Below are positions 4,241 through 32,349 of a stretch of DNA of 34,503 nucleotides, one piece after another. The position numbers were made by a program, and so were the translations under genes. This stretch comes from Macrostomum lignano. Taxonomy: Eukaryota. Each line of letters starts with the position of its first letter. Positions within the stretch are counted from its first letter, which is position 1. The notes under the pieces were generated by a model. It was not told where the DNA came from and did no database searches. It saw nothing but the letters and a program-made list of their open reading frames with translations. The stretch is from assembly GCA_002269645.1 (NCBI GenBank), contig NIVC01004810.1, positions 1-34,503 of the forward strand. Reading direction: 5' to 3'.

Positions 4241-4851
4241 GAGAGTGAGATTCTGAATTTCAGAGAGTGACTGCAGAGAGTGAGATTCTGAGAGTGACTG
4301 GAGAGACTGACATTCTAAGAGTGACTGGAGAGAGTGAGATTCTGAGAGTGACTGCAGAGAGTGAGATTCTGAGAGTGACTGCAGAGAGTGAAATTCTAAG
4401 AGTGACTGCAGAGAGTGAGATTCTGAGAGTGACTGCAGAGAGTAAGATTCTGAGAGTGGCTGCAGAGAGTAAGATTCTGAATTTTAGAGAGTGACTGCAG
4501 AGAGTGAGATTCTGAGAGTGGCTGCAGAGAGTGAGATTCTGAATTTCAGAGAGTGACTGCAGAGAGTGAGATTCTGAGAGTGGCTGCAGAGAGTAAGATT
4601 CTAAGAGTGACTGGAGAGAGTGAGATTCTAAGAGTGACTGGAGAGAGTGAGATTCTAAGAGTGACTGGAGAGAGTAAGATTCTGAGAGTGGCTGCAGAGA
4701 GTAAGATTCTGAATTTCAGAGAGTGACTGCAGAGAGTGAGATTCTGAGAGAGTCTGCAGAGAGTAAGATTCTGAATTTCAGAGTGAGATTCTGAGAGTGG
4801 CTGCAGAGAGTGAGATTCTGAGAGAGTCTGCAGAGAGTGAGATTCTGAGAG
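4241..4851. repeat. Minisatellite, 27-bp unit GAGAGTGACTGCAGAGAGTGAGATTCT, ~22 copies
   Basis: Tandem array seen directly, with GGA/GCA and AATTTC-insertion variants. Confidence 0.95.
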
Positions 4852-6776: not shown

Positions 6777-7120
6777 CAGAATCTGCGTACGCTGCTCCAG
6801 CGCCTGGCCGCGATGTTCGACGCCATCGCTCTGGTTCCACCGCCAGCCACCATCAAGGGCCACCATCTACCACCGTTTCGTGCCCCACATCGCCCGAGCC
6901 GACCGGTCAAAGCGGCTGGGTAGACGCCTCGGAGGCTTCAGACATCGTGGTCGGCGCGGCACTCGAGCAGCGAATTGTTGGCGATGCCTGAAAGTTGCTT
7001 GACTTCTTTTGCCCGCAACTCCCACTCGTTCGAGCAGAAGTACAGCGCCTTAGACCGCGAGCTGCTCGCGTTGTACCTGGCAGTCAGGCATTTACGGACC
7101 ACAAGCCGCTGGTCCACCCA
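6777..7120 (+). mobile_element. Degenerate Ty3/Gypsy LTR-retrotransposon pol remnant (end of RT and RNase H)
   Basis: Pieces read NLRTLLQRLA, IYHRFVPHIA, VDASEASDIVVGAALEQ, EQKYSALDRELLALYLAVRH and FTDHKPLV, which are the canonical Gypsy RT/RNase H motifs. There are stops, frameshifts and internal deletions. Confidence 0.8.
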
Positions 7121-7968
7121 ACTTCCGTCTTGTGGCCTCGGGTCCTGCGTCGCCTTACAGACGCCCCCGCGCGTACTGTCCCAATTAATGGTAGGTAAAT
7201 ATGAAGCGAGACTGCACCTGAGCTGATCAGTAAAGCCGGTTCGGCACGCGCCCGTGAAAACCAAATCAATGCTGTTAAAAATGATCTTTCAAATACAACA
7301 AGAGAACTGATAAATGTGTAATTAAAATGGGTTAACATAAGACGCCTTAGCGTGTGCAAGCGAGCATGGGTTGTGAGCTATCACCGGAATGAGCATGCCG
7401 ATCGTTGAAGACCCGCAATGGCTCACTAATTTCGGTTCAGTTGCTTTGCGTCTAGCTAAACGACGAAATTTCCTTTCTTTTGGTATCCGATTGCTCGTGG
7501 GACTTTCTCGAAAATGTTCTGAGGTTTAAGTAATGAGGCCTCCATAATGTAGATGGTGTAAAGAATTCATTGTTGTACCTCTAATTCGTTTCTGTTCCAG
7601 ATCATTGGGTTCTTCATCTGTCAATCCCTCATAGTCGTAGCCGTGAGAGCATCAGAAAATTCAACAAAAAATACAAAAGCGAAAAATCTCAAAAGAAAAT
7701 TAACCCATTTTAAAGATGCTTGTTGCTTGCTGCAGGTTAAAAAGCCTGTTGTTTTATTTTGTCATCAAAGCGTTTTCCTACTGACTCAAAGAAATAAACA
7801 CAGAAACGTATATATTTTTTCCGCCAAGTTGGGGTTCGGGGAAGTTAACAATAAAACCGCGGTAACAATTTCAATAGTTGGAATTAGGAGTGTTTTACTC
7901 GGTAAATCAAGATTCGAAGGATTCGCTTAGCAGACAGAGCAAGTTAAACAGTTAGTCCGGTGCTAAGT

Positions 7969-11578: not shown

Positions 11579-14500
11579 ATGGCGTTAGCTGCGGCGGTCA
11601 GCTTCTGTATTGGCCTGATCTGCCTAACGGCTGGTTCATCTTACGGCGCATCGATTCGTTGCACATTCGACGGGGTGCAGATTCCTGTTAATGACACGTA
11701 CACGTATCTTCAAGGCTGCCACGAGATTACCTGCGTCTGCGATCCCAACCTGCAGCAGATGTGCAAGAGTGTGCCGAGTGAGTATCTACGAATTATCTTC
11801 ATGTATCTACCTATGAACTGCTCACTGCTCTACCTATGCTCTACCTATGAACTGCTCACTAAAAACTGCTCTACCTATGAACTGCTCTAATTCTATTCAC
11901 TAAACCTCATCCATAGAGGGCTGTCTGCATCCGCTGGGCACATGCGTGGACGAGAATGCGCGCTACGAAATGAACACAACGCGAGGAGTTCACGAGTGCA
12001 TCTGTCGGAGAGAGATAGACGGCAAGAGTCTTGTCGGAACTGAGTGCACTATCAGTGAGTAGCACTCTTTTAAGCTGTACCGTATCTTCTAAGCTCTTAT
12101 GGGTTATCATAAAAGCTCGTTGCAGCTTCCACTCTGTCTGCTTCAACAATTAGCCTCTAGACTATCATCTGACATCAAAGTCGAAGTCGAACAAGCTTTG
12201 CAAGAAGAATTCGGATTTCAAACTCTGGAATCATTCTTCTCATCGCTTTATTGCATCTTTGCCGTGATCAAGTAGAACCACAATTAGAATTCAATGGCTG
12301 TATTCCTTGCCTAGTTGTCTCGCTCACTGCAGCGGAAGTATTCTGCTTGACTTCTTCCCAGGGTATTTTCAAACTATGACTTGCTTTTTAGTCTTTACAA
12401 ACATCAGTAAGAATTTTTTGGGGAAGGGGGGCATCACAAACCCGAAAAATCACAACTCCGAAATATCATAACTTTAAAATTGCTAGCAATGTCCTTTTCG
12501 CTTTCGGAGTTATGGAGTCCGTTAATGATCACTTCTGTCCTGTACCCACTAGAGCGATGTCTGGACGTTGACGGCACGTACAAAAGCGTCGGCGAGCGAG
12601 TCACCGTGTCGCTTAGCGGCACATTGTTTGAGTGCACCTGCGGCGGCCGCATGGATTATTGCAACTGTTCGACTTTGGAGTCGATTCGTAACGCTGACAA
12701 ATGCCTGGACGTCAATGGGCATTACATCCAGTCTGGTCACCGGGTTGTTACGCAAAGTGAAAATGGTGAATTTCTAATTTGCACTTGTCGCGGCAGTTCC
12801 GGTTACTCTGACTGCATGACCCAGGCCGAGTACGACCATCAGGATATGTGCCAGGGCAAGGACCACCAGTGGGTTACCAAGGGCAGCGAATTACGGATCG
12901 AATTTCAAGGCGATGATTACATCTGTCGGTGCAACGGTACCAACAAGCACGCCGGATGTCGCCTAGCAGACGAGGACGCGAACAAGTACCGGGGCCGCTG
13001 CCAAGACTACCATGGCCGGTTGGTTAAGGCTGGCGGCTACGTTCGGATTCTTCGCGGCGGTGCTGTGTTCGTCTGCCACTGCACTGGTACGAACACACAC
13101 GAGGGCTGCCTAACGGAGCAGGCTTTTTCGCACAGAGATGACTGCATCGATCTTAGCGGTGGCTATGTTAAGCGCGGCCGACTGGTGCGTATTCTCAACA
13201 ACGAGAACGTGATTGTTTGCACCTGTAAAGGCTCGTCAGGTTATTCGGACTGCCAGTCAGAGCAGGATTATAGCACGCGAAATCAATGCAAAGGTGCCGA
13301 TGGAAAATTTGTATCCAAGGGCCGCAAAGTACGAATAGTCAGCGAGGGTATAAGCTACGTTTGCCACTGCGCTGGAGCGGCAGGCTACAAGAACTGCTTG
13401 ACAGAGGAGGCTTACATGAACAAGGGCAAGTGCAAGGACGTAAACGGGCAGTATGTTGACAGAGGCAAAGAAGTCGTGGTGTTTCACCACAGCATCCTGT
13501 ATCAGTGTAAATGCATTGGAACCAACAGGTACCAGCAATGCAAGGACTACAACGCGATCGTCAACGCTGATAAATGCAAGAACTACAACGATACTTACGT
13601 AGAGGCGGGACAGATTGTGGTAATTAAAAGCTCCACAAATACAACTTTTTACTGTGAGTGCATGGGCAGCCAAGGATATAAAAACTGCTTGACTAAAGAA
13701 ATATTCGACAATATCAACAGATGTCAGAGTGCTAACGGTTCCTACGTTGAAATAGGCGAGGTTGTAGAATACAAGGTGTCAGGAACCATCTACGTTTGCG
13801 AGTGCAACGGGACAAACAAGTACAAAGATTGTGTATCAAAAGATGCATATTTGAATCGCGACCGATGTCGAGATGTCGACGGCAAGTATGTCGGCCGAGG
13901 TGAAGCAGTCCGAGTGTTGTCAGGTACCGAAGTCTACATTTGCCAGTGCCACGGTAGTAAAGGCATCGCCGAGTGCATGAGCAACGAAACTTACTACCAT
14001 CGAGGCATGTGCAAGGACCTGGAGGGAAACTTCCTTCCAAAAGGCGAGAAGATCTCTATTGAGCAGAATGAAATCATCTATGTCTGCGATTGCATCGGCA
14101 ATAACACTTACAAAAACTGTAAGACAATAGAGGCATTTCAAAACGCTGGCCGTTGCAAAGGACACAACGGATCTTACACAGATATTGGCGAGCCTGTAGC
14201 TGTAAAACATGATAATTATATTTTTGTGTGTATCTGCAATGGCACGAATAATTACATTCAATGTATGCTCGAGGAGACATGGAACAACCAAAATAAGTGC
14301 AAAGACATAGATGGAATTTATGTTAGCGAAGATGAACTCGTCAAGCATCAAGTAGGGGCCAAAATTTATGTTTGCCACTGCAAAGGAACAAATAAGTATG
14401 CTAACTGCGTTCCACAGGACGTCTTCAATAATCGCGGAAAGTGCCGCGATCGTGATGGAGATTACGTAGAACCTGGAAAGAAGGTCCGAATACGTCACGG

Positions 14501-16479
14501 AAAAAGGCGCTACGTTTGCGATTGCGAAGGTGAGAATCTCTACAAACAATGCGTCACTGAAGATCAATTTGAGAACAGAGAAAATTGCATTGGTAGCGAT
14601 GGTGAATATGTACTTCTGGATGAGAAGGTAAAGGTTGAAGTAGAGCAGGAATCATACGTGTGCACCTGCAAGGGAGCAATGGGTTATAGCGACTGTGTGA
14701 GTGAAGAATCGCTGCTACATAAGGACCAGTGCAAGGATGCTGTTAGTAAGAACTATTCAAAACGAGGTGAGAAAGTGCGGGTCCGGTGCGAGAAACAAAG
14801 TATTATCTTCATATGCGAATGCGCCGGCTCTAATCAGTACCGAAACTGCGTGACGGAGTTGAGCGTTAAAAACCAAGGCAAATGCAAAGATAAAAACGGC
14901 ACGTTTGTTCCGCAGGGCCAGCTTGTTCGGCACATCGTCTCTGAGACTTTGTATGTATGCAACTGCGGCGGCACAAATAGGTACCTGGACTGCATGACCG
15001 AGACGCAGTACAACAACAGACACAAGTGCCGTGGCATGGATGAAAACTACGTCGAGGAAGGTCAAATGGTAGTTGTTAAGTCCGGAGCAGACGTATTTGT
15101 TTGCATTTGCAACGGTAGCGACGGAGTCAGGAATTGTGTGACAAACGAGACTTATCACAATAGGGACAAGTGCCGTGACCTTCATGGTAACTACGTTGGA
15201 AAAGGTGAAAAAGTTTCAATTGAGCGCGAAAATCAAATTTACGTTTGCAATTGCGGAGGCAATAATGCTTATAAGAACTGCCAAACATTAGAGGCATTTG
15301 AAAACAATGGCCGTTGTAAAGGTTACAATGAGTCGTACGTGGACGCGGGAGAGCCTGTTGTCGTGAAGCAAGACCAGTACACCTATGTATGCATTTGCAA
15401 CGGTACAAACAAATTTGTTCAGTGCATGCAAGAGGAGGTCTGGAGAAATAAGAACAAATGCAGAGATATCGATGGTAGCTACGTTGAAGAGGATGATCGA
15501 GTAAATTACCGGTACAATAATCAAATCTACGTTTGTCGTTGCAAAGGAACAAACAGGTACGCCGACTGTGTCACCAAAGAGGCTTTTGAAAACCAAGGCA
15601 AATGCCGAGCAAGTGACGGCAGCTATGCTGCACCGGGACAAACCGTCCGTGTTGAGCATGGAGGCAAGGCGTACATCTGCTTATGCGAAGGTCACAATCA
15701 GTACGGCAAGTGCATGACTGAAGAGACTTACGCTAATCGTGAGAGGTGCAAGGGCAGCGATGGTATCTATGTCGACAAGGGACAGAAAGTAAAGGTCAAT
15801 GTTGAGCACTTGGTATACGTGTGCGTCTGCAAAGGCCAAATGGGCTACAGTGATTGTGTAACAGAGGAGTCCTTAATGCATCAGGACCAGTGCAAGGACG
15901 TGGTTAGCGGGGAATTCATTAGTAAAGGGGACAACGTACGAATACGGTGCGATCAGAAAAGTGCTGTATTTGTCTGCGAATGTATTGGCACCGATCAGTA
16001 TAGAGGATGCGTGACGGAGGAGAGCATAAAGAACAGAGGCAAGTGTAAGGACGACAATGGCACATACGTATCTCAAGGACAAAATGTGGCGAGAACAGCC
16101 GATGGCAAAACCTACATTTGCGTGTGCCAGGGCACAAACAACTATGGCAACTGCATGACGGAGGAGGACTACGTGAATCGGGATAAGTGCAAGGATCATC
16201 GTAGTGGGAGGTACATTGACTACGGGGACACCGTGACAGTGCTATACGCCGGCAAAGTTTGGATCTGTGTATGCGCTAAAGGTCCGCAGTACACCCAGTG
16301 CCAACCGGAGGCGACGGAGGAAGACTCGAATACGTCTGGTTTGTAAGGACAAGCACGGCAATTGGATAAAGGCTGGGGATTACTACAAGATCATGTCGAG
16401 AGGCGTCGCCTACAGCTGCCGATGCAAAGGCAACAATGTTGCTGTTGACTGCGAATGTAAGCTGGGCGGTTGCGTCTGA
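11579..16479 (+). CDS. Large secreted cysteine-rich protein (~1,420 aa) with ~29 tandem 4-Cys FN1-like/half-VWC modules; exons 11579-11777, 11917-12054, 12553-16479 (apparent frameshift near 16341)
   Basis: Signal peptide MALAAAVSFCIGLICLTAGSSYG. Two GTGAGT..TAG phase-1 introns keep the frame. There are 26 modules of ~48 aa (C-x~24-CxC-x8-C) in the long ORF and a 27th in the next frame ending at TGA 16479, plus one module in each of exons 1 and 2. No transmembrane segment is visible. Confidence 0.85.
11807..11887. repeat. Intronic repeat CTACCTATGAACTGCTC, ~4 imperfect copies
   Basis: Seen directly in intron 1 of the FN1-like gene. Confidence 0.7.
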
Positions 16480-17077
16480 AATTATTTTTGTTAAGTTTTC
16501 TAAACTTAAATAAGAATTTCATATTACACTTGCAAACACTTGTCTTTCAGTTGCCCAAAGCAATGAAGACAGTAGCTCTCAGTGGAAAGGAGGCCGGTGA
16601 ACTATTTTTTAATGCATAAATATGCCTAAATTACTCCCATTGGTGGAAGACTTTACTCCTATCGTCTATGCTGACGGTCTGAATTTGTGTTGGTGACTGG
16701 TTCCTTGTTTTTTGTTTAAATCTAATACTACGGGCGTACACTATTATTATAGACAATTTTATTCAACATGGCCTTACTAAATACTACTTTTCAGTAATAG
16801 AATTCAAATATTCCAATGTTTAAATAACTGAATTCTGAGCAAACAATTCAATTCGGTTGAAGAATTAAAAAAATCAAGAATGACTTGAAAGAAAAAATAT
16901 ATTGAGTGGTTGATAGTGACCTGCAAATTCTTATTGCTAATCGTGAAAATAACAAACGAAACCTAACGAACTTTTTTAATTTTAAACAAATAAATAGTTA
17001 AAAAGATTGATAAGCGCTATTTTCAACGCTGAGAGGAATAGCAAACAAAATATCAAAAACCCAGTTTAGCAAGTACG

Positions 17078-20000
17078 TTATTTCTCCCTGCCTGTCCGAG
17101 CCGCGGCGGCAACAGCCCTGCCAGCCAGATATTGGCCCCAGTGGCAGGCCAGATCATGCGGCGTCCATTGTTCCAAGCTGTCAATAGCGTTGAGCGCGGC
17201 AAACACCTTGGCGTCGGCTTCATCACCCGGCGCAAAAACAGGCCCGGCAGCAGCGTGCCCGTCATCTACCGAGGAGCCGGTATCCGGTGCGGTATTGTCG
17301 CCTGACTCAGCAGCAGCCGTTACGTTCACTGGCAACAGAAGGTCGTCGCAGGCGTAGCCCCTGGCAACCAACGCATCAGCGAGGTGCTCCGTCGGACCCA
17401 GGGCAAAGTAGGCAGCCGGGCCGGTTGGAGTGGAAGCGGATGGAGTCGCGTCGTCGCCTTGTATGTTTGTTGCACCAGTTGATGTACCCGCATTCGCTGC
17501 CAGTTGCTGATGCTTACCAGGGCGACGACGTTGGCGTCTGAAAATCGCGATGTGCCAGCATGAAGCATGAAACAAACGCATTTTGGCTCAACTGATATGT
17601 ACAGAAAGGTTCTACAAGCGTGTACTTTCTGCTAGACTCTATCGGTGCGGATCAATTAAAGTATCTAACAAGAAGTATCTAACATTTACCTAACAAGAAG
17701 AACGAGACCTCGCTGACGCAGCAGCTTTACGAGACTGCAAAATTTGGCAACGGATTCATTCTCGGCAGCAACTGGCCGAATCAGTACCGGCCAGCCAAAT
17801 AAATGAGCTGGCGATAGACGTGTAAGGCTGGCCAAGCCGCAGGCTTCCAGGTGAACTTCATTGCTAGCGTCTAGCTCAGTGGTGCTGGATACCAGTCGGC
17901 TAAGCCTGGTGGGCGGACCGAACAGGGGCTGGAACGCGTCCAGCACAGCCGGTTCGGAGAGCAGGCCGGGGTTTAGCACCACTTCTGATAGGCGGAAATT
18001 TAGAAAGCGTTCTTTTTCAAAGCCGTTACTAGGGAATATTAGACGGTTGCTAGGCCGCTCCTGTTAATTTTGATTAACAAATGAATAGCATCAATGTGTA
18101 GTAGGGCAGATATGCTTTTATGCTACTATCAGTAGTTCTAGCCAGGGAAAATAATTATGGTGGGGTTAGATCGTGAATTCCTTATTACTATAAGTATTCA
18201 GCAGTTTGAGCTCCGTGGTAACCATGGCTTTGTCTCGCATAGAGACGCCTAACCGCAGTACCCCTGTGAAACTTGTCTCTGCCTGGCCGAAAGCTTGTAA
18301 TGAGTTAGTAGGCTGGGTTGGAGGGTAATAGTGGATCAGGGATCAGGAAGGGCTGTGGGTAGCTGTATAGGAAGGCAGGCCTATACCTGTTCCAGTTGGT
18401 GCTCTGACGGTCCCCCTCGGAGTGCCCTCTGAGCGAACAGCCAGCGACCCTATTAAAGTTGGAGTGTGCCAACTCCAGAAGGACCAGGACTGAGTCTGAA
18501 CAGGACGGGACCGTTGGCACGGTCACTATAGGCACGGTCACTATAGAAATGGTGAGTTGGCGAAGCAAAGGGTGAAATAATCCCGGCGATTAGCCCTCCT
18601 GCCGCTTCATAGATAAGAGACTGTCTTGGCAAGAGTACCCGGGGTCTGGTAGGGAGGCTCCTCCGGGTGGCCACGGCCTTGGGGAGGTCTTCGGACCACT
18701 TTTTGGCATTTTCTAACCCAGGAGAAGGCACGGGCTGCCCCCGAGGTTCATTTAACCCCTGCCAGCCTATTGGGTTTGGGGTAGGCGTACGCTCTGAGGG
18801 TCGGGGGTAGGGCCCGCTCTCGGCCTGACTGGCGCCGCTTGCCCGGCTCGATGTACAGTCCTCTTAGTTCTAATTAGGATTTAAGTGTACATTAGTACAC
18901 TCCCAACCTGGAACCTATATCTCTCTAGTGGCGTTAGAGCCTGTTCAATGGCTGAGGCGCCGGATTTACTTATTTAGTTAGTTAGTTGAGCTCCGAGGTA
19001 ACCAACATCGAACAACAAATATAAATATTAGCGTAATAGCCCTGGCTTAGGGGCTGAAGCGCTCATACTGCATATAAAACAAAAAACAAATTGAGCTCCG
19101 GGAAAAAACCCGTTGTTGGTTTCCAAGTTGGTTTTAGTCTTGAAGCCAAATTCTAACTTGGGAATAAGAGGTAAAGTTGGGGAATACGTAAAACTGCTAC
19201 AGGTAGTCGATGCCGATGCCCTTAACACTGTACAAAAGCAGTCGACGCCTAACTAAATCTGCACCATTTTAAGGAAAGTAATTGTAATAACTATTGCATG
19301 CTCATTTCTACGTTTATTCAGTTTTTTTACCACAAGTTTCCTGCCTTTATTCCTTGATCGCTAAATACTAGGATTAGAGAAAATCAGGGACCTGGTGGCA
19401 GCACTCTACCCAAATCAAACCAGTTACTGTTAAATCCACTAAGAATAATTATAATAAACCAGTAAGCTTAGACCGCAAGGACCACGGCTGCAAATGCATA
19501 TTCTGACTTTTAATTAAGAAATAATGCAGGAACAGCCTCATCTGCATTTAATTTTGACTCAATGAAGTGTGCATAAACTTCGAGATCGCACCGAACTCGT
19601 GGCTGACGGCGGTAATAGCCAAGCTCGCAGCGCCAGGAACAGCTCCGGATCGGCTCGACGCACCGTTGCCACTTCGACAAGCTGGTCAAACTTTTGCTCC
19701 GCTGCCTCATTTTCACTGGACTCGGCCGTGGTTGATGGCACTCTCTTCGGCGCCGCATAGCCTGGCAAGTGTAGCAGTCGAATTTTGCGACAGTGCCGCA
19801 GCAGACTAGGAAACTGTGGACAGTTGGAGCTGAAACTGCGGCGCAGCCTCAGAATGGTGGCGCTTCGACGCGTCAATAGGCACAGCTCTGCGGAGTCTGA
19901 CGGAGGTAACAACGCTAACTTGACCTGCTGTTCGGCTATCGCCAAAGCCACGTCAATCTCAGAGGCTTCCCCAGCGCCAGCAGCGGTGATTTGGCCATTT

Positions 20001-20262
20001 TCGAACTGAAAAAGTTGATGGCCTTCAGCAAGGAGGCGCTCAACAGCTCGACTAGTTGGCTGCAGCTCGAGGACAGCGAGAGCAGCGCTGGATTGCCGCG
20101 CAGGCAGATCAGGCAGATGGCGGCTGGCGAGTCGCCGCTGCAGTTGGCGCTCAGACAGAGAAATTCTGTAAAGCCGCTGGCCAGGACTTGCAGATCGGCG
20201 TCCGGAATGTCCTGTGTGTCCAGCAAGACTATGATGACTCTGCTGGGACTGCTTTGGTGGGC
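17078..20262 (-). CDS. M1AP: Meiosis 1 associated protein (M1AP)-like; exons 20262-19592, 18060-17690, 17537-17078; start exon not found; apparent 1-nt deletion near 20009-20013
   Basis: Colinear motifs against human M1AP as recalled: SPSRVIIV~QPPRLLIV, ALAIAEQQVK~AVEDGLQQFK, AELCLLT~LEITILT, LRAWL~FKAWL, SEVVLNPGLL~QERLLCPSLL, FGWPVLIRP~YGLPFILRP, YFALGPTEHL..DDLLLP~FYVIMPSHSL..RELMLP. GT-AG introns have matching phases (0 and 2). Confidence 0.8.
18206..19004. mobile_element. 761-bp non-coding insertion (18225-18985) flanked by a 19-bp target-site-like direct repeat; probable non-autonomous non-LTR retroelement in an M1AP intron
   Basis: TTGAGCTCCG[T/A]GGTAACCA at 18206-18224 and 18986-19004. 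A (TTAG)n tail at ~18970-18985. GC-richer than the flanks and no convincing ORF. Confidence 0.7.
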
Positions 20263-20855
20263 CTTAAATGTGTGAGCAAACGAGTAAAATATTACACAGA
20301 GTTAAATAATTTGTATTACTTTTAGGCTAAATAATATTATGTTATCAGATGCAGTAAGCTTAAGTAAATATTCAATGAAAAAAGATTAAAAAAACGAGTA
20401 TTTCCATTGTTATAGAGGGAAATTAATAATAGTGAATATTGCAAAACTGTATTAATTGTCATTTAGGTCATGCGAAAACAATCTGTCTTAGTTAGGGAGC
20501 CTGTGCATTTTTATTTAGTAAGAAAAGATTGAACATTTAACTATCAGTAGTTATTAAAATATTCGAAAATTTAAAATTTATAAAATCAAATAAGTTTATA
20601 TGGTGTCTAAGAAGCATTTTTATTAGAAAAGCATGGTAAGCAATAACCAAATTAATGTTATGATACAGTATTATAGCTTTTAAGTATCAAAACATGAAAA
20701 TTTCAGTTTAAAATAATTTATCAAAATTAAATTGCTTTCGAATATATGCTCTATTGAAAAATTATAGTTTTAAAGCATACAAAATTGAAAAAACTAAATA
20801 CTCAATGCTCAACTCATTAATTAATTTTAAAATTGTTAATTAATTTAAGGAAGTG

Positions 20856-20908
20856 TGGCACTCTCTTCAGCGCCACATAGCCTGGCAAGTGTAGCAGTCG
20901 AATTTTGC
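20856..20908. other. 53-bp copy of M1AP coding sequence (19736-19788) embedded in AT-rich DNA
   Basis: 51/53 identical, same orientation, offset 1120 bp. Both differences are CG>CA. Confidence 0.9.
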
Positions 20909-22546
20909 AATTTTGTGCAATTTGCAATTTTATGAAAATTGCAATAATTGCAATAATTGCAATAATATTAATAATTTTAAAATTGCCAAACCATGCCAAA
21001 GCATATAAATTATGCAATATACTCATATGTTTCAATATATACCATTAAGGGTATAAACTATGTAAAACTAAATATTCTGAAGTACTATGAAAATTAATTT
21101 TGAAATAAAAATCTTAGAATAGCACACTTGTTTTTAAAACTGTGGCAAGTGTAGCCAGTGGACAATACTTCAAGCTTCACAACTGAGAAAATAAATGAAA
21201 GAGGATGTAAAATTTGAATACAGAACTGCACACTTTTATAAGAATAAAAATGGTAATCATGCAGGTATAGTAAAACTAACTGTTAAACTTTTAAAATGTA
21301 GCCAGCCATACTACAACATTTAACATATCAGTTTATGGTCTCATAAAAGTTTCAGCCATTTCATATCAGCAGTAGCTTCAGAAACAAGTACTGGTGAGCC
21401 AGCACGGCTAAAGCAAGAGTCAAAAACAACCAGCAAATTTACATGGCATAAAGTAAATATACATAACAGTACAATTAAAAATCCAAATTTGCATAACTGG
21501 TATGACTGCCCATACAAAAAGTGCATTCTATGGTCCTGCAGAGTATCAAAACATTTTAACTCTTTAATAGTAAATAGATATAGATTTTAGTATATTGGAT
21601 TATCATGATTAAAGTTGCGCGTGTGTGAAATTTGCAGATCGCCAGTGTCGTCTTTTTTCTTTTCGTTTCTAATTACAAGCATTTTTTTAATTTTTAAGTT
21701 TTTTTTGTAAAAAGTATGTCCTACGTTTAAATTTCTGGTTAATCTTTTTAGCAAAAGAGTTGGCTTTGTTTAATGATGCGGATTCCGGGCTTTTTAAAGA
21801 ATCGAACTCTGAGAAAGTGATTTGTTCCATTTGTTACAAGTTTCTAATGTGGACTCTACGAGGTTGCTGTTTAGATAAAATTGTACTAGCGCTTACAATT
21901 TTATTTAAGCGACATTAAAATATAACTCAAACAGTAATACAGCGATATTGAGAAAAATGACCAAGAAGTAAAAGTTGTACCAAGTCTTTTAACGTCGTCG
22001 CTGTATTTGTGCAAATTTGGTCGTAAAGCGAGCAATATATCATTGGTTTTCCTCCTTATGGGATTTAAATAAGATGCATAAGAGCTAGGGACTAAAACTG
22101 TTGCGTTTTTTATTTTATGCAGCTTTAAAGCTTTTAAAACTGAGATCAAGCACGGAATTTACATGTAAATATAGTTGGCCATGACTAATGGCGCAAGAAA
22201 TAATAAAATATTTAGTCCTTTACAAGAAAATATTGATATACAGACAATACTAAGCTGCTAGAGTGAAAGCCACTCCTTTAAAAATTAATCCTGTATTGGC
22301 GTGGCAATGCATATTTCTAAGCACTTAGCCCAAATATTTGTTTTTACCTAACTATTTATCTCAATATGGGCCACGTAACATACGAAATCGTCGGCGTGGA
22401 AATTTTGAAGAGAAAATTTAAATCCACAGATTTTATTTTATTTTTTCTATTAGTTAAACATACTGAGTAATGGCAGTGGGCCACCATGGCAGTGCAGTCC
22501 TATCGATAGACTAGGCATATTGAACAGTATTATCTGAGTTTAAACG

Positions 22547-24227
22547 TATAAACTATGCATTTTGTTTGATATTATTTAATTAAATTAACTGGTATAAAAG
22601 TTAGGCTAAGGCAATGTCTTTAGACTTTAGTGTTTGTTGTAGTTATATAGATATAGAAACTCAGAGCATACAAAATTATTACCACTCAGCCAGACTCATT
22701 TTGGTATTATGATAATTAAATTAGGCCCTAGCTACTTTATTAGGCCTAACTCTTTGGACAGTTTTTATCATGCATTTGTTTGAAATTGCCAGTTGTTAAT
22801 GTTAATTCAATTATTTTGTATAAGGTACTTTTTTAAAATTCTATTTTATAGTCTTTCTTAGAATACTTTATATAGGGTTTATATCTAAAGACTTTGATAA
22901 TGATAGCTAGTTTAATATAGGTTAGGCTATATCATACATACATAATACCCAGCCAACCTAGCCAATCTAGCTAGCTGACAAGGGGCCCAGCCCCTTGCCA
23001 AGGTAAGTTACAAAAATTCCCACCCAAAAAGTATAGATGTAGTACTTATTAGATGATTAAACAATTTAGCTTTAATAATATAGTCATAGTAGGCTAGTTA
23101 GACCTTTTCTTATTATTCATCCAAAATTATATTAATTTTTGCTTACCTTAGCTTAGGTTTTTTATAGGTAAGTCACAATTTTTGTCAAAAAGTAAGTTGT
23201 ATGGCCAGTGTAAATCAGGGTGTTACTATTATATATATATATAAATGCATTATATATTATATTTTGTATTAGTATTTGAAAGGCAAAGTTTTACTATAGC
23301 TCATAACTGGAATTTACTTATATGTGTCTATAGCCATATCTAACTTTTCCTATTACTGAATCTATATTAATATCTAAAGACTATATCTACATCTATAGTT
23401 ATTAAATTTTCTATATCTTCCTATAACTTTTAATGATATTAAAGCTAGTGATAACATGAATAAATAAAAGATAAATAAATTCCTAATTCTTAAGGTCTCA
23501 AAGCAAATAATCAATCTTATTATCATAGGCTTTTTTATCTAAAACTATTTTTATTATAACTGTATCTCATTAAAATCTTATTGCTTGAATTCTTGACCTA
23601 GGACTTTAGAGATCCTTTGATTTAAAATGAAAACATTCATCTGAACTATAGCTCTTATTATCTTTGTAATAAAATTTAACATAAAAAACCTTGGTAGCTT
23701 AAGTATTCCAACCTAAAGAGATTTATAGTTCCTCTTATAATAGCTTTCAAATAGGCAATATTTATTTACTTTCACTTCTATTGTTCTACTCCTACCTACC
23801 AAATCAATAATTTTAATGGTCTTTCAAGTCTTAGTTATTGAATGGCAAATATTATTTGATCTAGGACCCTAGCTTAGCTTAGACACTATCTAGGGTCAAG
23901 AACCTATATTTTATTTGAAATATAGCTTTTATTTGAAATCTGACATTTTATTGTCAGTAACAATTGACTTTCTAGCCTTAATGTTAACTTTTCTTATTAC
24001 AATCAAGTACCTTTATATAGCATGTTAGAAATATAAATAGCCAACTACTCATAGTAGTAAACAATAAAAAACTGCTTATCTCAAAAAAATTTATCCCAAA
24101 AATGGGCCTTACTATAACATACCAGTTCAACATTGTATAATAATTGTTATACATATATATTCATAAACAAAAAATTATAACAAGACCAAACATTGAAAAA
24201 CTTAATTAAAATTCAAAGGATATCATT
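22547..24227. other. AT-rich, CpG-free, TA-rich block containing mutated copies of nearby satellites
   Basis: No CG dinucleotide found by eye in 1,681 nt. Decayed copies of the 30-bp and 17-bp satellites at 23865-23904 and 23941-23990. Confidence 0.8.
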
Positions 24228-24292
24228 CGTGCACTTTGCAGTAGATTTAATTCAACAGTGCAGGGAAGCATGTCAATAATCAGCCTGCAGTC

Positions 24293-27200
24293 ATGACTGA
24301 ATCAGATGACAATTTGACAGCTAAACAAGCTGATGAAAGTGGTGAAGGTAGGCTGTCATCTCTATCAGGACTGCAACCATCGCAACAAATTGAATTTGAA
24401 GGTTAGTAAACTGTACTACTCTAATAAACCAGATGCCTAGACAATGTTTAAATGTGTCTGTTCTAACCTGCGCACCTTTAATTCCTTTGAATGCCTGCAG
24501 ACTGCCTATCCGAGCTATTGGCTAATTTGACTAAATCGCAGGCAAAATGTTTAAATCGAATGCGAAGATTTGAATGGCCAGCGTCTGTTCGTAAGTTGAT
24601 ATTATGATTTATGAATATGCTGGGCGATTGAGGGATTAGCGACTAGTGAAGCAGCAAAATAAGGGATTAGCGACTAGTGTAGCATCAGACTGAGGGATTA
24701 GCGGCTGCTGAAGCATCAGAGTGAGGTATTAGTGGCTACTGGAGCATCAGACTGAGGGATTAGCAGCTACTGAAGCATCAAGAGTGAGGGATTAGCGGCT
24801 GCTGAAGCATCAGAGTGAGGTATTAGTGGCTACTGGAGCATCAGAGTAAGGGATTAGCGGCTGCTGAAGCATCAAGAGTGAGGGATTAGCGGCTGCTGAA
24901 GCATCAAGAGTGAGGGATTAGCGGCTGCTGAAGCATCAAGAGTGAGGGATTAGCGGCTACTGAAGCATCAAGAGTGAGGGATTAGCGGCTACTGAAGCAT
25001 CAGAGTGAGGGATTAGCGGCTACTGAAGCATCAAAGTGAGAGATTAGCGGCTACTGAAGCACCGATAAAGAGAATTAGGTAATAAATAAAAAGAAACATT
25101 CACAAAAGCATCTAACTAGGCCCCAAGCATTTCCTACACGTGCTCCCTCACCGCAGCCTGGCTAATGTCTCTGTCCTGTCGAACCTGCGAAGATGCCGAA
25201 CAAATATTACGCCGATTGCGTCGTCGTTTCGCCGCCGTTGCGTCTACCATTGGCGCATCTGACAGCGCAGATACAGGAGATGAGTCAGCTAGAGCCGGCC
25301 TCCCAGCCGAGTTAAGAGGCCTCGAACAATGCCTTAGCGTTGAACTGACTGCGGCAATGCAGAAATATCAATGTAAGTAGCTCCAATGACAGGAAATTAG
25401 AGTGCCTATCTACTAAATCAGGGGTCGGCAAACCTAGCGCATGACTGCGGGCAACATTGAGCGGGCTGAATTGCTATTGTGAAGTTTATTTAATATTTTT
25501 TTCGCATTTTTGTCAGCCGGGGAGATACCTGCTGGCGGCAGCCTGTTAGACAGTCCCGGTCGGCTATCCCGCCTCAACTGCGCCCGGGCTCGACGGTCTC
25601 AGTTCGCCGCCGCTGCCGCCTCCGCCTCCTCCTTTTCTGCTGAGTCCCCAGTGTCCGCCCCAGGCCTGTTGAGCGCGCTGCCAGATTCCACCTATTCGCT
25701 GTTGTGCTCCGTGTCCGATCTGCTAATTAATCTCTGGCTGTCTGCTGCCAATCAGCACGGTGAGCTGGGCTTTCTGGGAAATTTTTATCTTCTAGAAGAT
25801 TTTCATTCGGGTTTAGGGCAATTTCACTGTCAGTGACAATTGACTGTCAGGACGACAATTGACGGTCAGTGACAATTGACGGTCAGTGACAATTGACGGT
25901 CAGTGACAATTGACGGTCAGTGACAATTGACTGTCAGTGACAATTGACTGTCAGGACGACAATTGACGGTCAGTGACAATTGACTGTCAGTGACATTTGA
26001 CTGTCAGTGACATTTGAATGTCAGTGGTAATTTATTTTACTGTCAAGGTGACATTTGACTGTCAGGGTGACAATTGACTGTCAGTGACAATTGACTGTCA
26101 GTGACAATTGACTGTCAGGGTGACAAACAACTGTCAGTGACATTTGAATGTCAGTGACAATTGACTGTCAAGGTGACAACTGTCAGTGACAATTAACTGC
26201 CAAGGTGACAATTGACTGTCAGGGAGATAATTAACTGTCAGTGACATTTGACTGTCAGGGTGACAATTGACTGTCAGTGACAATTGACTGTCAGGGTGAC
26301 AAATAACTGTCAGTGACATTTGAATGTCAGTGACTTTTGAATGTCAGTGACAATTGACTGTCAGTGACAATTGACTGTCAAGGTGACAACTGTCAGTGAC
26401 AATTAACTGCCAAGGTGACAATTGACTGTCAGGGAGATAATTAACTGTCAGTGACAATTGACTGTCAGGACGACAATTGACGGTCAGTGACAATTGACGG
26501 TCAGTGACAATTGACTGTCAGTGACGACGGTCAGTGACAATTGACTGTCAGTGACATTTGACTGTCAGTGACATTTGACTGTCAGTGACATTTTACTGTC
26601 AGTGACATTTGACTGTCAGTGACATTTGAATGTCAGTGGTAATTTATTTTACTGTCAAGGTGACATTTGACTGTCAGGGTGACAATCGACTCAGTGACAT
26701 TTGACTGTCAGGGTGACAAATAACTGTCAGTGACATTTGAATGTCAGTGGTAATTTATTTTACTGTCAAGGTGACATTTGACTGTCAGGGTGACAATTGA
26801 CTGTCAGTGACAATTGACTGTCAGTGACAATTGACTGTCAGGGTGACAAATAACTGTCAGTGACATTTGAATGTCAGTGACTTTTGAATGTCAGTGACAA
26901 TTGACTGTCAGTGACAATTGACTGTCAGTGACAATTGACTGTCAGTGACAATTGACTGTCAGGGTGACAAATAACTGTCAGTGACATTTGAATGTCAGTG
27001 ACTTTTGAATTTCAGTGACAATTGACTGTCAGTGACACTTGACTGTCAGGGTGACAACTGTCAGTGACAATTAACTGCCAAGGTGACAATTGACTGTCAG
27101 TGACATTTGACTGTCAACCCTAGCCCAAACGCTAACGTTAACTTAAATCGTCGACATCTTTTAGTATTCGACACCTTTTACTTGTATCTTTTTACTCGGA

Positions 27201-30200
27201 TTGTTCAGTGTTTAACGCTTTCTCCTTGTTGTCCAGGTCCAGCAGAAATCATTACTATTGATGAGGTGAATATCTAATATATTTTAAGGCATTGAATATG
27301 AAACAACTGAGGTATGTCTTTAATCCATTTTTAGTCCCGTTTGCCGGTTATTTGTGAGTCATCCTGAACCCAGTAGTTATCATAGTCTGTAACTAAATTT
27401 TTATCACCAATCGATGGCGGGTATATCTGCATTATACTACTGTTTAGAAGTAGTGTTTTTGCATACTTCACAAACTCATTCTATAAGCCTGCTTGAATTT
27501 CTGTGGGCGCGTGGTTGTCACTGCTTTTAGTCAGCCCTTAATGTCGCTTTTAGGGTCATATAACTCCACCTTAGATATGCTTTTAAAATCATGGCCCATT
27601 TTGGGTTCTGTTTTTTGACATAACCCCACCTCAGACACAATGTCTAGGGTCGAAACCCCAGCTCAGACACTGTCTAGGGTCGAGACCCCAGCTCAGACAC
27701 TCTAGGGTCAAGACCCCAGCTCAGACACTGTCTAGGGTCAAGACCCCAGCTCAGACACTGTCTAGGGTCGAGACCCCAGCTCAGACACTGTCTAGGGTCG
27801 AGACCCCAGCTCAGACACTGTCTAGGGTCGAGACCCCAGCTCAGACACTGTCTAGGGTCGAGACCCCAGCTCAGACACTGTCTAGGGTCGAGACCCCAGC
27901 TCAGACACTGTCTAGGGTCGAGACCCCAGCTCAGACACTGTCTAGGGTCGAGACCCCAGCTCAGACACTGTCTAGGGTCGAGACCCCAGCTCAGACACTG
28001 TCTAGGGTCGAGACCCCAGCTCAGACACTGTCTAGGGTCGAGACCCCAGCTCAGACACTGTCTAGGGTCAAGACCCCAGCTCAGACACTCTAGGGTCGAG
28101 ACCCCAGCTCAGACACAATGTCTAGGGTCGAAACCCCAGCTCAGACACAATGTCTAGGGTCAAGACCCCAGCTCAGACACTGTCTAGGGTCAAGACCCAG
28201 CTCAGACACAATGTCTAGGGTCGAAACCCAGCTCAGACACTGTCTAGGGTCAAGACCCCAGCTCAGACACTCTAGGGTCGAGACCCCAGCTCAGACACTC
28301 TAGGGTCGAGACCCCAGCTCAGACACTGTCTAGGGTCAAGACCCCAGCTCAGACACTCTAGGGTCAAGACCCCAGCTCAGACACTCTAGGGTCAAGACCC
28401 CAGCTCAGACCCTCTAGGGTCGAGACCCCAGCTCAGACACTCCATGGTCGAGACCCCAGCTCAGACCCTCTAGGGTCAAGACCCCAGCTCAGACACTCTA
28501 GGGTCAAGACCCCAGCTCAGACACAGGTGTCTCCAATGGTGCACAATGCTTTCTATGGTCACCTATCCGCCTTAGACTCTGTTCAAAGCTTCACGCCACC
28601 CTAAGCAATGTATAGTAGATATCACATCACATTGCATAGTCCTCCAACCTACTCAATCCAGAGGGCCCACGCGCGGTTTGGACGAGCAGCCGGCGCTGGT
28701 ATCTGCGCTGCCTCGCTGACGCGGGCGTAGCTTCCAGTTCTAACGGGCTGGACGGGCAATCCAGCGTTGTGGAGACTGCCAGCGGCGACAAGGATATGCG
28801 CCAGTTCGTCCGGCTGGCATTGGCGCGCTACCTGGACGCGCTGGAGGCCAACACGAAAGTTTCTAGAAAGAGGAGCGCGCCCGCTTCCATCAGCAGTTGC
28901 AGCGGGAGCGAAACGGAAGGTACAACAAATTCATTCAGTATCTTTTAATAATCACCCTTTGTGTCCTTGCATGACCCCTTAATGAACTCCAGCAATTTGA
29001 TTCAATCTTCATTAGGAATCGATCTCCTTGAAGAATCGCCCTTCGATCTCATTGAAGAATCGCCCTTCGATTTCATTTAAGAATCGCCCTTCGATCTCAT
29101 TGAAGAATCGCCCTTCGATCTCATTTAAGAATCCCTTCGATCTCATTTAAGAATCGCCCTTCGATCTCATTGAAGAATCGCCCTTCGATCTCATTTAAGA
29201 ATCCCTTCGATCTCATTTAAGAATCCCTTCGATCTCATTTAAGAATCGCCCTTCGATCTCATTTAAGAATCCCTTCGATCTCATTTAAGAATCGCCCTTT
29301 GATCTCATTTAAGAATCGCCCTTCGATCTCATTTAAGAATTCCTTCGATCTCATTTAAAAATCGCCCTTCGATCTCATTTAAGAATCGCCCTTCGATCTC
29401 ATTCAAGAATCGCCCTTCGATCTCATTTAAGAATCCCTTCGATCTCATTTAAGAATCGCCTTTGATTTCATTCATGAATCCCTTCGATCTCATTTAAGAA
29501 TCCCTTCGATCTCATTTAAGAATCGCCTTTGATTTCATTCAAGAATCCCTTCGATCTCATTTAAGAATCCCTTCGATCTCATTTAAGAATCGCCCTTTGA
29601 TCTCATTCAAGAATCCCTTCGATCTCATTTAAGAACCGTAAATAATGCTCTGACACCACTTCAACAGACCGCCGCCAGCAGCAGCAGAAATCCGAGGAAG
29701 TCCTGTACCCTGCTTCCGGCCTGTTCTGCCGCAATATTGTCATTGATTTGGGCGCGGACCGGAACGCTAGTTTGTTAGCAACTGACCAAACACCAGACAC
29801 CCGTAAAGCCGATGAGCAGGCGGAGGCCGACCGCCCGGAACCGGATAGTCAACAAGATTTTACCGAAGCCTGCGAGACTGTTGATCCGTCCAGCATTGAA
29901 CAGAACGGCGGCGCTGTACAAGACGACGAGGAGGACGACTCTTGCAGCATCGATCTGGACAATCTAGAAGTGGTTGACGACCTTGTTAACGACTGCGCTT
30001 TAAGTTTAGTGGGTCCGGAACACGTCATCGGCGGCGAGGATAGCAACGGCGCTGTTGATAAGGACGCCAGCAATGGTGAAGCCTGCATCCTGCTGGAACA
30101 GCCGTCAAGCAGCGACTGTCCCGATCCGCTGATGCGTCTAGACACTACCGACCCCAGTCAGGAGTACACCGTGCCAGCTGCCCTTGCCGATGCCTACAGC

Positions 30201-32349
30201 CGACTGTCCACCGTCATTGCCGCCTGCAGTGTCGGCGTCGCCGACTTGTCCACTAGCAATCCACAGTCGGGATCGGCTGCGCCAGCTGATAGTCGCGAGT
30301 TCGTCCCCTACGCGGGAGCGGCAGTCGTCAGTCCCAGCCAGTGCGGCTTGTGTCGGAAGTACGCCTCCGTGCAGCCGGTTGGCGACACCAAGGCCAGGCG
30401 GAGGCAGCTGCGCCCCTTGCTGCCAAGGCCGCCGCGGCCTCCGCCTCCACCACTGCCGCCGTCATCAAACGAGATGATAGACTTGGACGTGTCGCGTTCG
30501 CTGAAGCTGCTTATTCGATTCGAATCTCGGCTGGGCTCTGATCCTCCGCCGCCGCCTTCAATTTCCTCTTTTCCGCCGCCGCCACCTCCGCCCCCTCGAG
30601 CACCAACGATAGCGTCGGAGCCTCCGGCAGCACCAATGAGTGCAGTGTCGGAGCCTCCATCTGCACCAGCGACTACAGCGTCGGAGCCTTCATCAGCACC
30701 AACGACTACACCGTCGGAGCCTCCATCAGCACCAAGGACTACACCGTCGGAGCCTCTATCAGCACCAACGACTACACCGTCGGAACCTCTGGCAGCACCA
30801 ACGACTACACCGTCGGAGCCTCCATCAGCACCAAGGACTACACCGTCGGAGCCTCTATCAGCACCAACGACTACACCGTCGGAACCTCTGGCAGCACCAA
30901 CGACTACACCGTCGGAGCCTCCATCAGCACCAAGGACTACACCGTCGGAGCCTCTATCAGCACCAACGACTACACCGTCGGAACCTCTGGCAGCACCAGC
31001 GACTACAGCGTCGGAGCTTCCATCTGCACCAACGACTACAGCGTCGGAGCCTCCATCAGCACCAGCGACTACAGCGTCGGAGCTTCCATCAGCACCAACG
31101 ACTACAGCGTCGGAGCCTCCATCAGCACCAACGACTACACCGTCGGAGCCTCCATCAGCACCAACGACTACACCGTCGGAGCCTCCATCAGCACCAACGA
31201 CTACACCGTCGGAGCCTCCATCAGCACCAACGACTACACCGTCGGAGCCTCCATCAGCACCAACGACAGCGTCGGAGCCTCCGGTAGGACCAGCGACTAC
31301 AGCGTCGAAGCCTCCATCAGCACCAACGACAGCGTCGGAGCCTCCGGTAGGACCAGCGACTACAGCGTCGGAGCCTCCGGCAGCACCAGCGACTACAGCG
31401 TCTGAGACTCAGCCCCGTCGCGTGTCGACATCCTCCGAGGCGGACACCTTCGTAGCCGACCAGTCAATCCAAGACGTGACGCAATCGATGGAGTCGCTAA
31501 TAGCGGGCGAATTGAGCTCGGTCGAATCTGAGCTGGCGTCGGTCATCGCACGAGGCGAATCGCTGCTGCTCCAACAGCCGAGTTTCGGGCCTACCTGGCC
31601 AGAGTCGCCGCCAGAATCGTCCAACGTCTTTCCAGCTGTGGACACTGTTGTTGGCCAAGCTGTTGGCTTATTGGCTAGCGATTTGGCCAAAACTGAGGAG
31701 GATTCTAACAGCAGCAGCAGAGCTAGAATGATTGACAGCTCGAATCAGCGTCAGTCGCTAGTTGCTAAGCGGATCGGTGGTCTTCGGACTTTATCGCAGT
31801 TTACCCAGTTGACCGTCGGTTCGAAGCGCAACTGCTGGCCAACGACTTCGGCCAATACCACAGCGGCAACTGGCGGCCAAGCCAGCGAGCAAGTCAGCAG
31901 CAGCAGTGGCGGAGGCGACGAGCCAGCCGCTGAAGTCGTCGTCCCTGAAGCTGGCGATGCAAACGACTTTGACAATGGCAACAGTCGCAGTTTGGGCCTG
32001 AAGTGGCGTCCAATCATGTTCAGCTGGGCAAAGTCCGGCAGCTCTGCTGCAGCCAAGCAGCGCCGGCTGGCACCCGCCGCCACGGCCTCCCCAGTCGACG
32101 AATCTGGCGACGCTGGCGAACCCGAAGCCGTCATTGATCCGGTAAAGGCCTTCAAATATTGCAATTCAACCTTACATAAGAAAAACCATAGGATTATAAT
32201 ATAGAAAGATTATCCTAATGCTTGCTGACCAGTTGCCTTTAGTAGAATGTTAAGCATTTGTTGTTATTTTCTCTCCTCAGGCCCGGTTAAGTTTGATGTC
32301 GCGCAGATCCTGGCGTCGATTCTCTGATCGGCTTCGAGTCCTGCCCTGA
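24293..32349 (+). CDS. Uncharacterised multi-exon gene; exons 24293-24401, 24501-24590, 25157-25372, 25517-25759, (optional microexon(s) 27237-27353), 28662/28664-28919, 29668-32141, 32281-~32349; large disordered Pro/Thr/Ser-rich exon
   Basis: Consecutive GT-AG introns with consistent phase 1 give one open frame (MTESDD..EFE|DCLSELL..WPASV|PWLMSLSCRTC..KYQ|SGEIP..NQH|EGPRAVW..ETE|DRRQQQQK..). No family was recognised. The start codon and last exon are uncertain. Confidence 0.75.
24629..25062. repeat. Intronic minisatellite, 31-32-bp unit AGAGTGAGGGATTAGCGGCTGCTGAAGCATC, ~14 copies
   Basis: Seen directly. Confidence 0.95.
25827..27117. repeat. Intronic minisatellite, 17-bp unit CAGTGACAATTGACTGT, ~75 copies with higher-order sub-duplications
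   Basis: Seen directly. Variant blocks recur, for example near 26016, 26628 and 26739, and near 26170 and 26380. Confidence 0.95.
27630..28524. repeat. Intronic minisatellite, 30-bp unit GACCCCAGCTCAGACACTGTCTAGGGTCGA (28-bp variants), ~30 copies
   Basis: Seen directly, with a homogeneous core at ~27770-28060. Confidence 0.95.
29026..29634. repeat. Intronic minisatellite, 24/22-bp unit GATCTCATTTAAGAATC(GC)CCTTC, ~26 copies
   Basis: Seen directly. Confidence 0.95.
30613..31406 (+). repeat. Coding minisatellite, 33-bp unit encoding SEPPSAPTTTP, ~24 copies
   Basis: Seen in the DNA and in the 818-aa ORF translation. Confidence 0.95.

Follow-up and report, generated by a model that had tools for sequence, protein, structure and literature searches.

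A sharply bounded CpG-free block between two divergent genes of Macrostomum lignano, with a context-specific C-to-T signature that may stem from dense cytosine methylation

Directional loss of cytosine has been described in several systems, to which we compare here a CpG-free block of 1,681 nt in the animal Macrostomum lignano, located at positions 22547 to 24227 of a contig of 34,503 nt (NIVC01004810.1, assembly GCA_002269645.1, forward strand; hereafter the window, meaning this whole stretch) and tentatively read as a separate spacer or an old insert whose cytosines were eroded under dense methylation in the germline. In fungal repeat-induced point mutation (RIP), duplications of ~400 bp or longer are the target, and all copies are mutated. 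As represented by RID/DIM-2 in Neurospora, it converts C to T on both strands according to the 3' neighbour, with a preference for CpA, and leads to AT enrichment, a rise in TpA, and sharply bounded AT-rich blocks beside normal genes. The footprints of AID/APOBEC deaminases in animal retroelements are clustered C>T/G>A changes in non-coding or mobile DNA, which depend on the 5' neighbour (TC, CC, WRC) and are strand-asymmetric. Methylation-driven CpG decay is strand-symmetric, can remove CpG completely from local non-coding DNA in hosts with DNMT1 and DNMT3, and leaves a reciprocal excess of TpG/CpA; in vertebrates and some invertebrates, methylated transposons and intergenic DNA have become poor in CpG in this way. 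DNMT3A/B of vertebrates additionally prefer CAC/CAG among non-CpG sites; such DNMT3-type non-CpG methylation (mCAC/mCAG) is known from somatic cells (neurons) and embryonic stem cells of vertebrates, and no mutational footprint of it has been reported. Outside fungi, RIP is not known (PMC9246332, PMC12543289), CpG hypermutation in basidiomycetes has been called 'RIP-like' (PMC3318451), and M. lignano is reported to retain DNMT1 and DNMT3 together with low-level 5-methylcytosine (PMC11292947, PMC9246332, PMC10658182).

The block is set apart from the remainder of the window primarily by its CpG content, for which the following segments are relevant (o/e, observed/expected ratio; no strand assigned):

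22547..24227: CpG-free AT-rich block; GC 0.26; 0 CpG vs 29.0 expected
22560..24040: core with the full mutational signature, from sliding trinucleotide counts
20302..22546: rest of the intergenic region, internal control; AT-rich; 36 CpG vs 48.8 expected
20899..21405: second CpG-poor segment; 1 CpG vs 10.4 expected; CA/TG o/e 1.46; TpA 0.87; classical decay signature

The expected number follows from the 245 C and 199 G of the block, and the complete absence of CpG pointed out in an earlier sequence-only reading of this DNA is confirmed. The resulting gap, from 22545 to 24228, is the largest between CpGs in the window; the next ones measure 634, 506, 504, and 443 nt, and all four lie in CpG-less satellites or in 20899-21405. 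If CpG occurred at the local AT-rich o/e of 0.74, a block without any would have a probability of 5e-10, and even a vertebrate-like o/e of 0.2 would give only 0.003. Vertebrate bulk DNA is less depleted than the block (0/29), whereas the host of the block is otherwise nearly undepleted, with a window-wide CpG o/e of 0.88. Moreover, since the adjoining sequence at 21405-22546 (GC 0.33) keeps the expected CpG (30 vs 30.1, o/e ~1.0; TpA 0.89; CA/TG 1.05), the CpG loss of the block exceeds what mere AT-richness would bring about.

This loss is accompanied by a dinucleotide profile that differs from that of every other non-coding stretch of the window. The strand-merged o/e values of the block and of AT-rich controls of the same window are:

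CG: block 0; controls 0.55-0.99
CA/TG: block 0.91; controls 1.05-1.16; window 1.10
TA: block 1.12-1.13; controls 0.89-0.90
AG/CT: block 1.29; controls 0.97-1.08
CC/GG: block 1.47; controls 0.88-0.96
AC/GT (5'-neighbour class): block 0.87; unchanged relative to controls
GA/TC (5'-neighbour class): block 0.77; control 0.77, unchanged
CAG/CTG: block 0.88; control 1.56
CAC/GTG: block 0.46; control 1.10
CAT: block 0.80; control 1.02
CAA: block 1.18; control 1.14
TAG/CTA: block 1.68; control 0.75

The abundance of TA, which had also been noticed from the sequence, is real, as TpA reaches 1.12-1.13 in the block against 0.80 in the window and 0.89 in adjacent AT-rich DNA. TAG and CTA outnumber CAG and CTG by 101:19 in the block and by 62:54 in the adjacent AT-rich control (Fisher p=3e-7), and the contrast between CA[C/G] and CA[A/T] likewise separates block from control (Fisher p=0.002). 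Both strands are affected alike (TAG 57 / CTA 44, CAG 11 / CTG 8, CAC 5 / GTG 5), and the remaining G and C are found in RGCY contexts, with 28 AGCT vs 7.9 expected and 10 GGCC vs 1.0. This pattern is what would be left by a filter in which C is kept before a pyrimidine and G after a purine, that is, by C>T change that affected every CpG and part of the CpA, mostly at CAG/CAC. In addition, between 22651 and 24000 TAG/(TAG+CAG) lies within 0.78-0.92 in all 300-nt windows, and it stays at or below 0.69 elsewhere in the window, apart from one very AT-rich and one satellite window; the signature is thus uniform and sharply bounded.

Forward simulation from five generic intergenic 'ancestors' of the same window, evaluated by the squared distance to the block profile, gave distances of 0.07-0.75 for C>T change targeted to CpG and CpA, 0.49-0.99 for CpG only, and 0.43-0.72 for CpG combined with context-free GC>AT decay. 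The model with CpG and CpA was the best for four of the five ancestors, and for the fifth (5000-6300) the best was the same model with weak decay in other contexts. The proposal that CpA>TpA change had gone beyond CpG decay is sustained insofar as this model fits better than the CpG-only one and CA/TG is not enriched, and it is weakened by a CpA o/e of 0.95. Together with the substitutions in the satellite relics described below, the composition points to context-specific C>T loss exceeding plain CpG decay. Indeed, CpG decay of methylated DNA produces the reciprocal excess of TpG/CpA seen in 20899-21405 (CA/TG 1.46), whereas CA/TG in the block is 0.91 and the excess concerns TpA and TAG/CTA, with depletion of CAG/CAC, so that a non-CpG component would be needed besides CpG decay. 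The order of depletion, CG first, then CAC and CAG, CAT, and CAA, resembles that of DNMT3-type non-CpG methylation. Dependence on the 3' neighbour combined with strand symmetry suggests a specificity of the DNA-methyltransferase type, acting on double-stranded DNA. The AID/APOBEC deaminases (a deaminase was one of the agents suggested by the sequence-only reading) share with the block the clustering of C>T/G>A in non-coding DNA and do not fit in context and symmetry, since TC/GA and AC/GT are unchanged and both strands are equally affected; the AID hotspot AGCT is enriched 3.5-fold in the block.

The locus is present in three contigs of assembly GCA_002269645.1, here L001, L002, and L003. The reverse complement of L001 aligns to positions 7063-29988 of the window at 96.8-98.3% identity and L002 to 15810-30928 at ~96-98%, while L003 extends only 150 nt into the block and was used for the control region only. 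The window thus represents a further haplotype, paralogue, or assembled version of a locus with at least three near-identical copies. Collinear counterparts of the block are found in L001 (1,670 nt, 0 CpG, 30.0 expected) and in L002 (1,695 nt, 1 CpG, 29.7 expected); the two contigs that carry it with 0 and 1 CpG are NIVC01002664.1 and NIVC01002013.1. Between these copies and the window, substitutions amount to 1.7% and indels measure 7, 5, 6, 9, and 18 bp, as one expects of true alleles or paralogues. The block is real, and as both other copies are CpG-free but for that single CpG, this state precedes the divergence of the copies. An artefact of assembly, amplification, or sequencing, against which the sequence-only reading had cautioned, has next to no probability, because the block recurs collinear and depleted in two further contigs with allele-like substitutions and indels, and nothing in its support was found.

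The sequence-only reading had described the block as carrying decayed, reordered copies of the local repeats and had suggested that it may be a rearranged duplicate. Two relics of satellites can be recognized in it, listed here with the intervening duplication and with their counterparts in the window, which were delimited with Tandem Repeats Finder (TRF):

23860..23904, + strand: relic, ~1.6 units of the 30-bp satellite; core 23876-23904 matches 26/29; score 38
23908..23952, + strand: 18-bp tandem duplication (TTTTATTTGAAATATAGC), found by TRF between the two relics; copy number varies among genome copies
23941..23992, + strand: relic, two units of the 17-bp satellite and the right junction of its array; 23941-23972 matches 27/32; score 39
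25826..27145, + strand: 17-bp satellite array and right junction, counterpart of the relic; TRF, 73 copies
27623..28524, + strand: 30-bp satellite array, counterpart of the relic; TRF, 30.5 copies at 93%; CpG kept (TCGAG)

Both relics, as claimed, are genuine copies, for their scores of 38 and 39 compare with maxima of 20 (30-bp) and 24 (17-bp) among 300 dinucleotide-preserving shuffles. The junction CTAGCC..TAAyGTTAACTT (27120-27143) repeats at 23972-23992, directly after the 17-bp relic, and aligns to 27084-27149; in L001 this junction reads CTAGCCCTAAGGTTAACTT, a closer match than that of the window. L001 also contains one 18-bp unit fewer than the window. The weaker echoes of two other satellites are attributable to chance: near 23562, the score of the 24-bp satellite is 17, with a mean of 16.8 under the null (p=0.49), and near 23334 the 21-bp satellite gives p=0.04, uncorrected over 20 tests. 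Both relics are on the + strand, and the suggested reverse order of the pieces accordingly rests on two pieces only.

Relative to the satellite consensus and junction, the relics show 11 differences, seven of which are C>T/G>A (two in CAG, two in CG, one in CAC, and two in CT). The remaining ones are three G/C transversions and one A>T; changes from T to C or from A to G are lacking. Five of the seven transitions fall in the 12 CG/CAG/CAC sites, compared to two in the 26 other C/G sites (one-sided Fisher p=0.022), a small sample of ~80 aligned bases with 38 C/G sites. One of the changes is still polymorphic, as L002 retains the CTCAG of the satellite where the window and L001 read CTTAG (CAG>TAG). 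The minisatellite arrays themselves (25826-27116, 27623-28524, and 29019-29635) vary strongly in length among the genome copies: the 17-bp array measures ~1.29 kb (window), ~0.46 kb (L001), or ~0.38 kb (L002), the 30-bp array ~0.9 kb (window, L001) or ~0.27 kb (L002), and the 24-bp array is far longer in L001.

Beyond the relics, which sum to ~130 nt or 8% of the block, no source is apparent in the window. Smith-Waterman alignment tolerating C>T/G>A near-matches on both strands of the whole window gave no score above those of shuffled sequences other than the relic, nor did separate alignment to each of the flanks (18000-19500, 20300-22546, 24228-25830, 27117-27625, 28520-29020). With ordinary scoring on both strands, the block beyond the 130-nt relic aligns nowhere else in the window, leaving more than 90% sourceless. 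A duplicate of local repeats is recognizable in ~8% of the block only. A decayed satellite array was rejected too, since autocorrelation has no peak in either the ACGT or the purine/pyrimidine alphabet and TRF at score 30 returns only trivial repeats. Likewise, Pfam searches of the six-frame block and of neighbouring open reading frames (ORFs) found no coding, transposable element (TE), or organellar remnant, and Rfam and ARAGORN found no structured RNA or tRNA. At the block ends, the search for terminal inverted repeats (TIRs), long terminal repeats (LTRs), or a target-site duplication yielded only chance-level AT-rich matches.

These searches bear on the main rival to the methylation reading, namely inheritance of the composition from a family of mobile elements: a TE or another mobile or foreign fragment would have been already CpG-free and rich in TA/TAG on arrival, with no special local mutation. 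Sharp boundaries, a uniform signature across 22560-24040, and the lack of homology to other parts of the window speak for such an arrival. Moreover, an intron element at 18000-19500 shows a milder form of the profile of the block (TA 1.15, CC/GG 1.28, CA/TG 0.89), and a comparable ancestor needs only CpG loss and uniform decay. However, no convincing TIRs or LTRs, no target-site duplication, no six-frame TE domains, and no residual periodicity were found in the block, and 0/29 CpGs is beyond known CpG-poor genomes (P=0.003 even at o/e 0.2, as given above). In addition, the local-satellite relic has undergone GC-to-AT changes when compared with its counterpart nearby, and one of these still segregates, which argues that decay happened in place. 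On balance, we regard inherited composition as unlikely, albeit with a real chance of being correct.

The repeats of the locus also bear on the comparison with RIP. In a true RIP-like defence, a premeiotic C>T system that senses repeats, or a deaminase guided by them, would have destroyed a duplicated segment in an animal. Several properties of the block speak in its favour: TpA/ApT is 1.18 and (CpA+TpG)/(ApC+GpT) is 1.04, against 0.87 and 1.23 in the window; the CpG+CpA model gives the best fit; the relic of local repeats exhibits C>T/G>A and no reverse transitions; change is strand-symmetric and dependent on the 3' context, as with the DNMT-family RID; and CpG removal is fuller than slow decay usually yields. 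The AT enrichment with its rise in TpA and the sharp limits beside normal genes are shared with fungal RIP as well. However, Neurospora prefers CpA, whereas in the block CpG was hit far more and CpA is mildly depleted. The recognizable duplicate is only 8% of the block, most of which is not a detectable repeat, and repeats of 17-, 30-, 24-, and 33-bp units, kilobase-scale and located 1.6-7 kb from the block, maintain normal GC and their CpGs (the CpG o/e of the 24-bp array is 1.96). The partner satellites of the relics are unaffected, in contrast to RIP, which mutates all copies. The same is found in an 870-bp tandem duplicate of L001 (85% identity), with 53 transitions vs 46 transversions, a direction of 29 vs 24 that reveals no bias, and transitions that are mostly in CpT/CpC, not in CpA/CpG. 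The absence of a current CpA bias among segregating transitions and the confinement of RIP to fungi point in the same direction, and a RIP-like defence is thus very improbable. The repeat-targeted C>T process put forward in the sequence-only reading finds no support: dependence on repetition was tested for and not found, and classifying the block as RIP would be unwarranted, the process being region-specific and not repeat-induced.

Outside the block, decay directed to CpG is demonstrably active in the same intergenic region, where it can be followed in the following feature:

20856..20908, + strand: 53-bp copy of the left-gene sequence 19736-19788, with only two differences, both CpG>CpA

At 20868/9, where the source has TCGGC, the window reads TCAGC and L001 reads TTGGC, which indicates two independent deaminations of one CpG, on opposite strands. 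The CpG>TpG/CpA change of methylation-driven decay is, therefore, directly seen in the region of the block, and the counterpart of 20899-21405 in L001 holds 0 CpG. The 53-bp copy is directly followed by microsatellites of the AATTGCAAT type.

A further explanation is neutral drift to equilibrium, in which old unconstrained DNA would have followed a general AT-biased spectrum with no local methylation. The differences of the relics from the satellites do go toward A/T, and the block diverges between copies by 1.45-1.73% vs 0.18-0.99% in its neighbour, a 1.5-10x excess that would be expected of unconstrained sequence. However, a context-free process leaves dinucleotide o/e values unchanged or nearer to 1, and not at the 1.47 of CC/GG, the 1.29 of AG/CT, or the 1.68 of TAG. 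In the rest of the locus, over 11.7 kb between copies, CpG is barely hypermutable (1.2% mutated vs 0.8-0.9% in other contexts), and given a window CpG o/e of 0.88 and a value of 1.0 in neighbouring AT-rich DNA, the genome-wide spectrum cannot erase CpG. We consequently deem drift quite improbable. The higher divergence of the block may reflect deeper coalescence or a lack of constraint rather than ongoing hypermutation, which it need not imply, since singletons form a mosaic of haplotype segments. In the three-way alignment, the window and L002 are identical across the control region and the left portion of the block; a cluster of 17 differences is private to the window at 23461-23795, and L002 has private ones at 23821-24108. 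Such mosaic divergence suggests that haplotypes or paralogues have recombined or undergone gene conversion.

The explanation we tentatively retain is erosion under methylation. The block would be a discrete spacer of ~1.5-1.7 kb in the divergent intergenic region that includes a small copy of the 30-bp and 17-bp satellites and is probably an old insertion or the product of local duplication or rearrangement. It would have decayed in situ through C-to-T and G-to-A changes on both strands, at cytosines set by their 3' neighbour, with a loss that was complete at CpG and partial at CpA (mainly CAG and CAC). Such erosion would have lowered GC to 26% and turned CAG/CTG and CCA/TGG into TAG/CTA. Its cause would be 5-methylcytosine that deaminated spontaneously in a domain, possibly a silenced insert, kept densely methylated in the germline or in stem cells by the retained DNMT1/DNMT3 system, with a DNMT3-type spill-over into CpA. 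We place the chances of this explanation somewhat short of even.

Several results weigh against it. CpA in the block is only mildly depleted (82 vs 86 expected, o/e 0.95), and TAC/GTA is not enriched despite the depletion of CAC. Among the transitions segregating inside the block between the three copies, CpA accounts for 5/145 (3.4%) and CpT for 8/194 (4.1%), and with no preference for CpA, a CpA-directed phase may be over or may never have existed. When 18000-19500 is taken as the ancestor, CpG loss and uniform decay suffice, with a moderate distance of 0.24, and the signature could thus be partly inherited instead of acquired. Non-CpG methylation in invertebrate germlines is generally deemed negligible. 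Finally, all results come from one locus.

A more specific variant would be a locus-restricted, methyltransferase-type hypermutation in M. lignano, specific to the 3' neighbour (CpG far above CAG/CAC), that completely erases CpG from selected non-coding DNA or inserts. It would constitute an animal analogue of RIP or of methylation induced premeiotically (MIP), not targeted by simple repetition and guided, for example, by de novo methylation dependent on PIWI-interacting RNAs (piRNAs). This we hold to be rather improbable.

CpG decay of methylated DNA is well known, and a sharply bounded CpG-free block with a CAG/CAC>TAG footprint in a nearly undepleted animal genome is an unusual variant of it. 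If the block is indeed the footprint of a methylated domain, it would provide a concrete, bounded locus for where DNMT1 and DNMT3 act in M. lignano, as well as a test case for CAG/CAC methylation in an invertebrate germline or stem-cell lineage and for its targeting. If instead it is merely an old element that inherited its composition, it is ordinary. The finding is a moderately interesting lead, and it supplies a signature for genome scans, i.e., zero CpG combined with TAG/(TAG+CAG) above 0.75.

The surrounding locus is eukaryotic, with spliced genes and many minisatellites, and the block is flanked by two genes:

17078..20301, - strand: left flanking gene, BOX15_Mlig030923 family, hypothetical protein; P0121 98% identical; gene model in L001
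24293..32204, + strand: right flanking gene, proline-rich and uncharacterised; P0122 matches its exons

According to the annotation of L001, these genes are divergently transcribed, so that the position of the block between two divergent genes, which the sequence-only reading had deduced, agrees with the annotation. The intergenic region corresponds to 20302-24292 of the window, and the block is its right-hand 42%. The start codon of the right gene, an ATG at 24293, lies 65 nt past the end of the block, and the gene at 1-5978 (- strand) of L001 maps to a start at ~24293 in the window. With a chimeric query built from ORFs on either side of the block, the NCBI protein PAA56103.1, 'BOX15_Mlig030923g3 [Macrostomum lignano]', was matched at 98% identity.

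In the left gene region, a 19-nt direct repeat (TTGAGCTCCGWGGTAACCA) marks both ends of a unit of 780-870 bp (18206-18990 of the window). The window has a single copy of this unit, L001 has two in tandem that share 85% identity (reverse complement 11134-12870), and in L002, which lacks 18180-18619 of the window, the unit is partly deleted. Its dinucleotide profile is a milder form of that of the block (TA 1.15, CC/GG 1.28, CpG 0.66). In the right gene, the segment 30599-31410 (+ strand) consists of a coding tandem repeat of 33 bp (11 codons) in ~25 copies, which encodes proline-rich repeats of the TTTPSEPPSAP type, and the non-coding arrays at 24629-25061 (31 bp), 25826-27116, 27623-28524, and 29019-29635 apparently lie within introns of this gene.

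Farther from the block, an uninterrupted ORF of ~1,300 aa at 12411-16346 (+ strand) contains ~20 cysteine-rich repeats of ~62 aa (C..G.YV..G..V......YVC.C.G...Y..C). The 1,288 aa searched gave no Pfam match and no homologue in 5.8 billion proteins, and the ORF is annotated in L001 as a gene of 1,313 aa; the product seems to be an orphan repeat protein specific to this lineage. A weak match to RT_RNaseH_2 (LTR-retrotransposon RNase H; E=8e-4, below the gathering score) at 6924-7223 (+ strand) is probably a retroelement fragment. At the left end of the window, a Lon protease gene (1-3190) carries the Pfam domains Lon_lid and Lon_C. Its only close named relative is the UniRef protein P0006, also from Macrostomum lignano, which shares long peptide runs with two reading frames of the window and is hence a frameshifted model of the same Lon gene. 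A 21-bp minisatellite of 3.5 copies (2581-2655) is located in the Lon intron between the exons of the lid and of the proteolytic domain.

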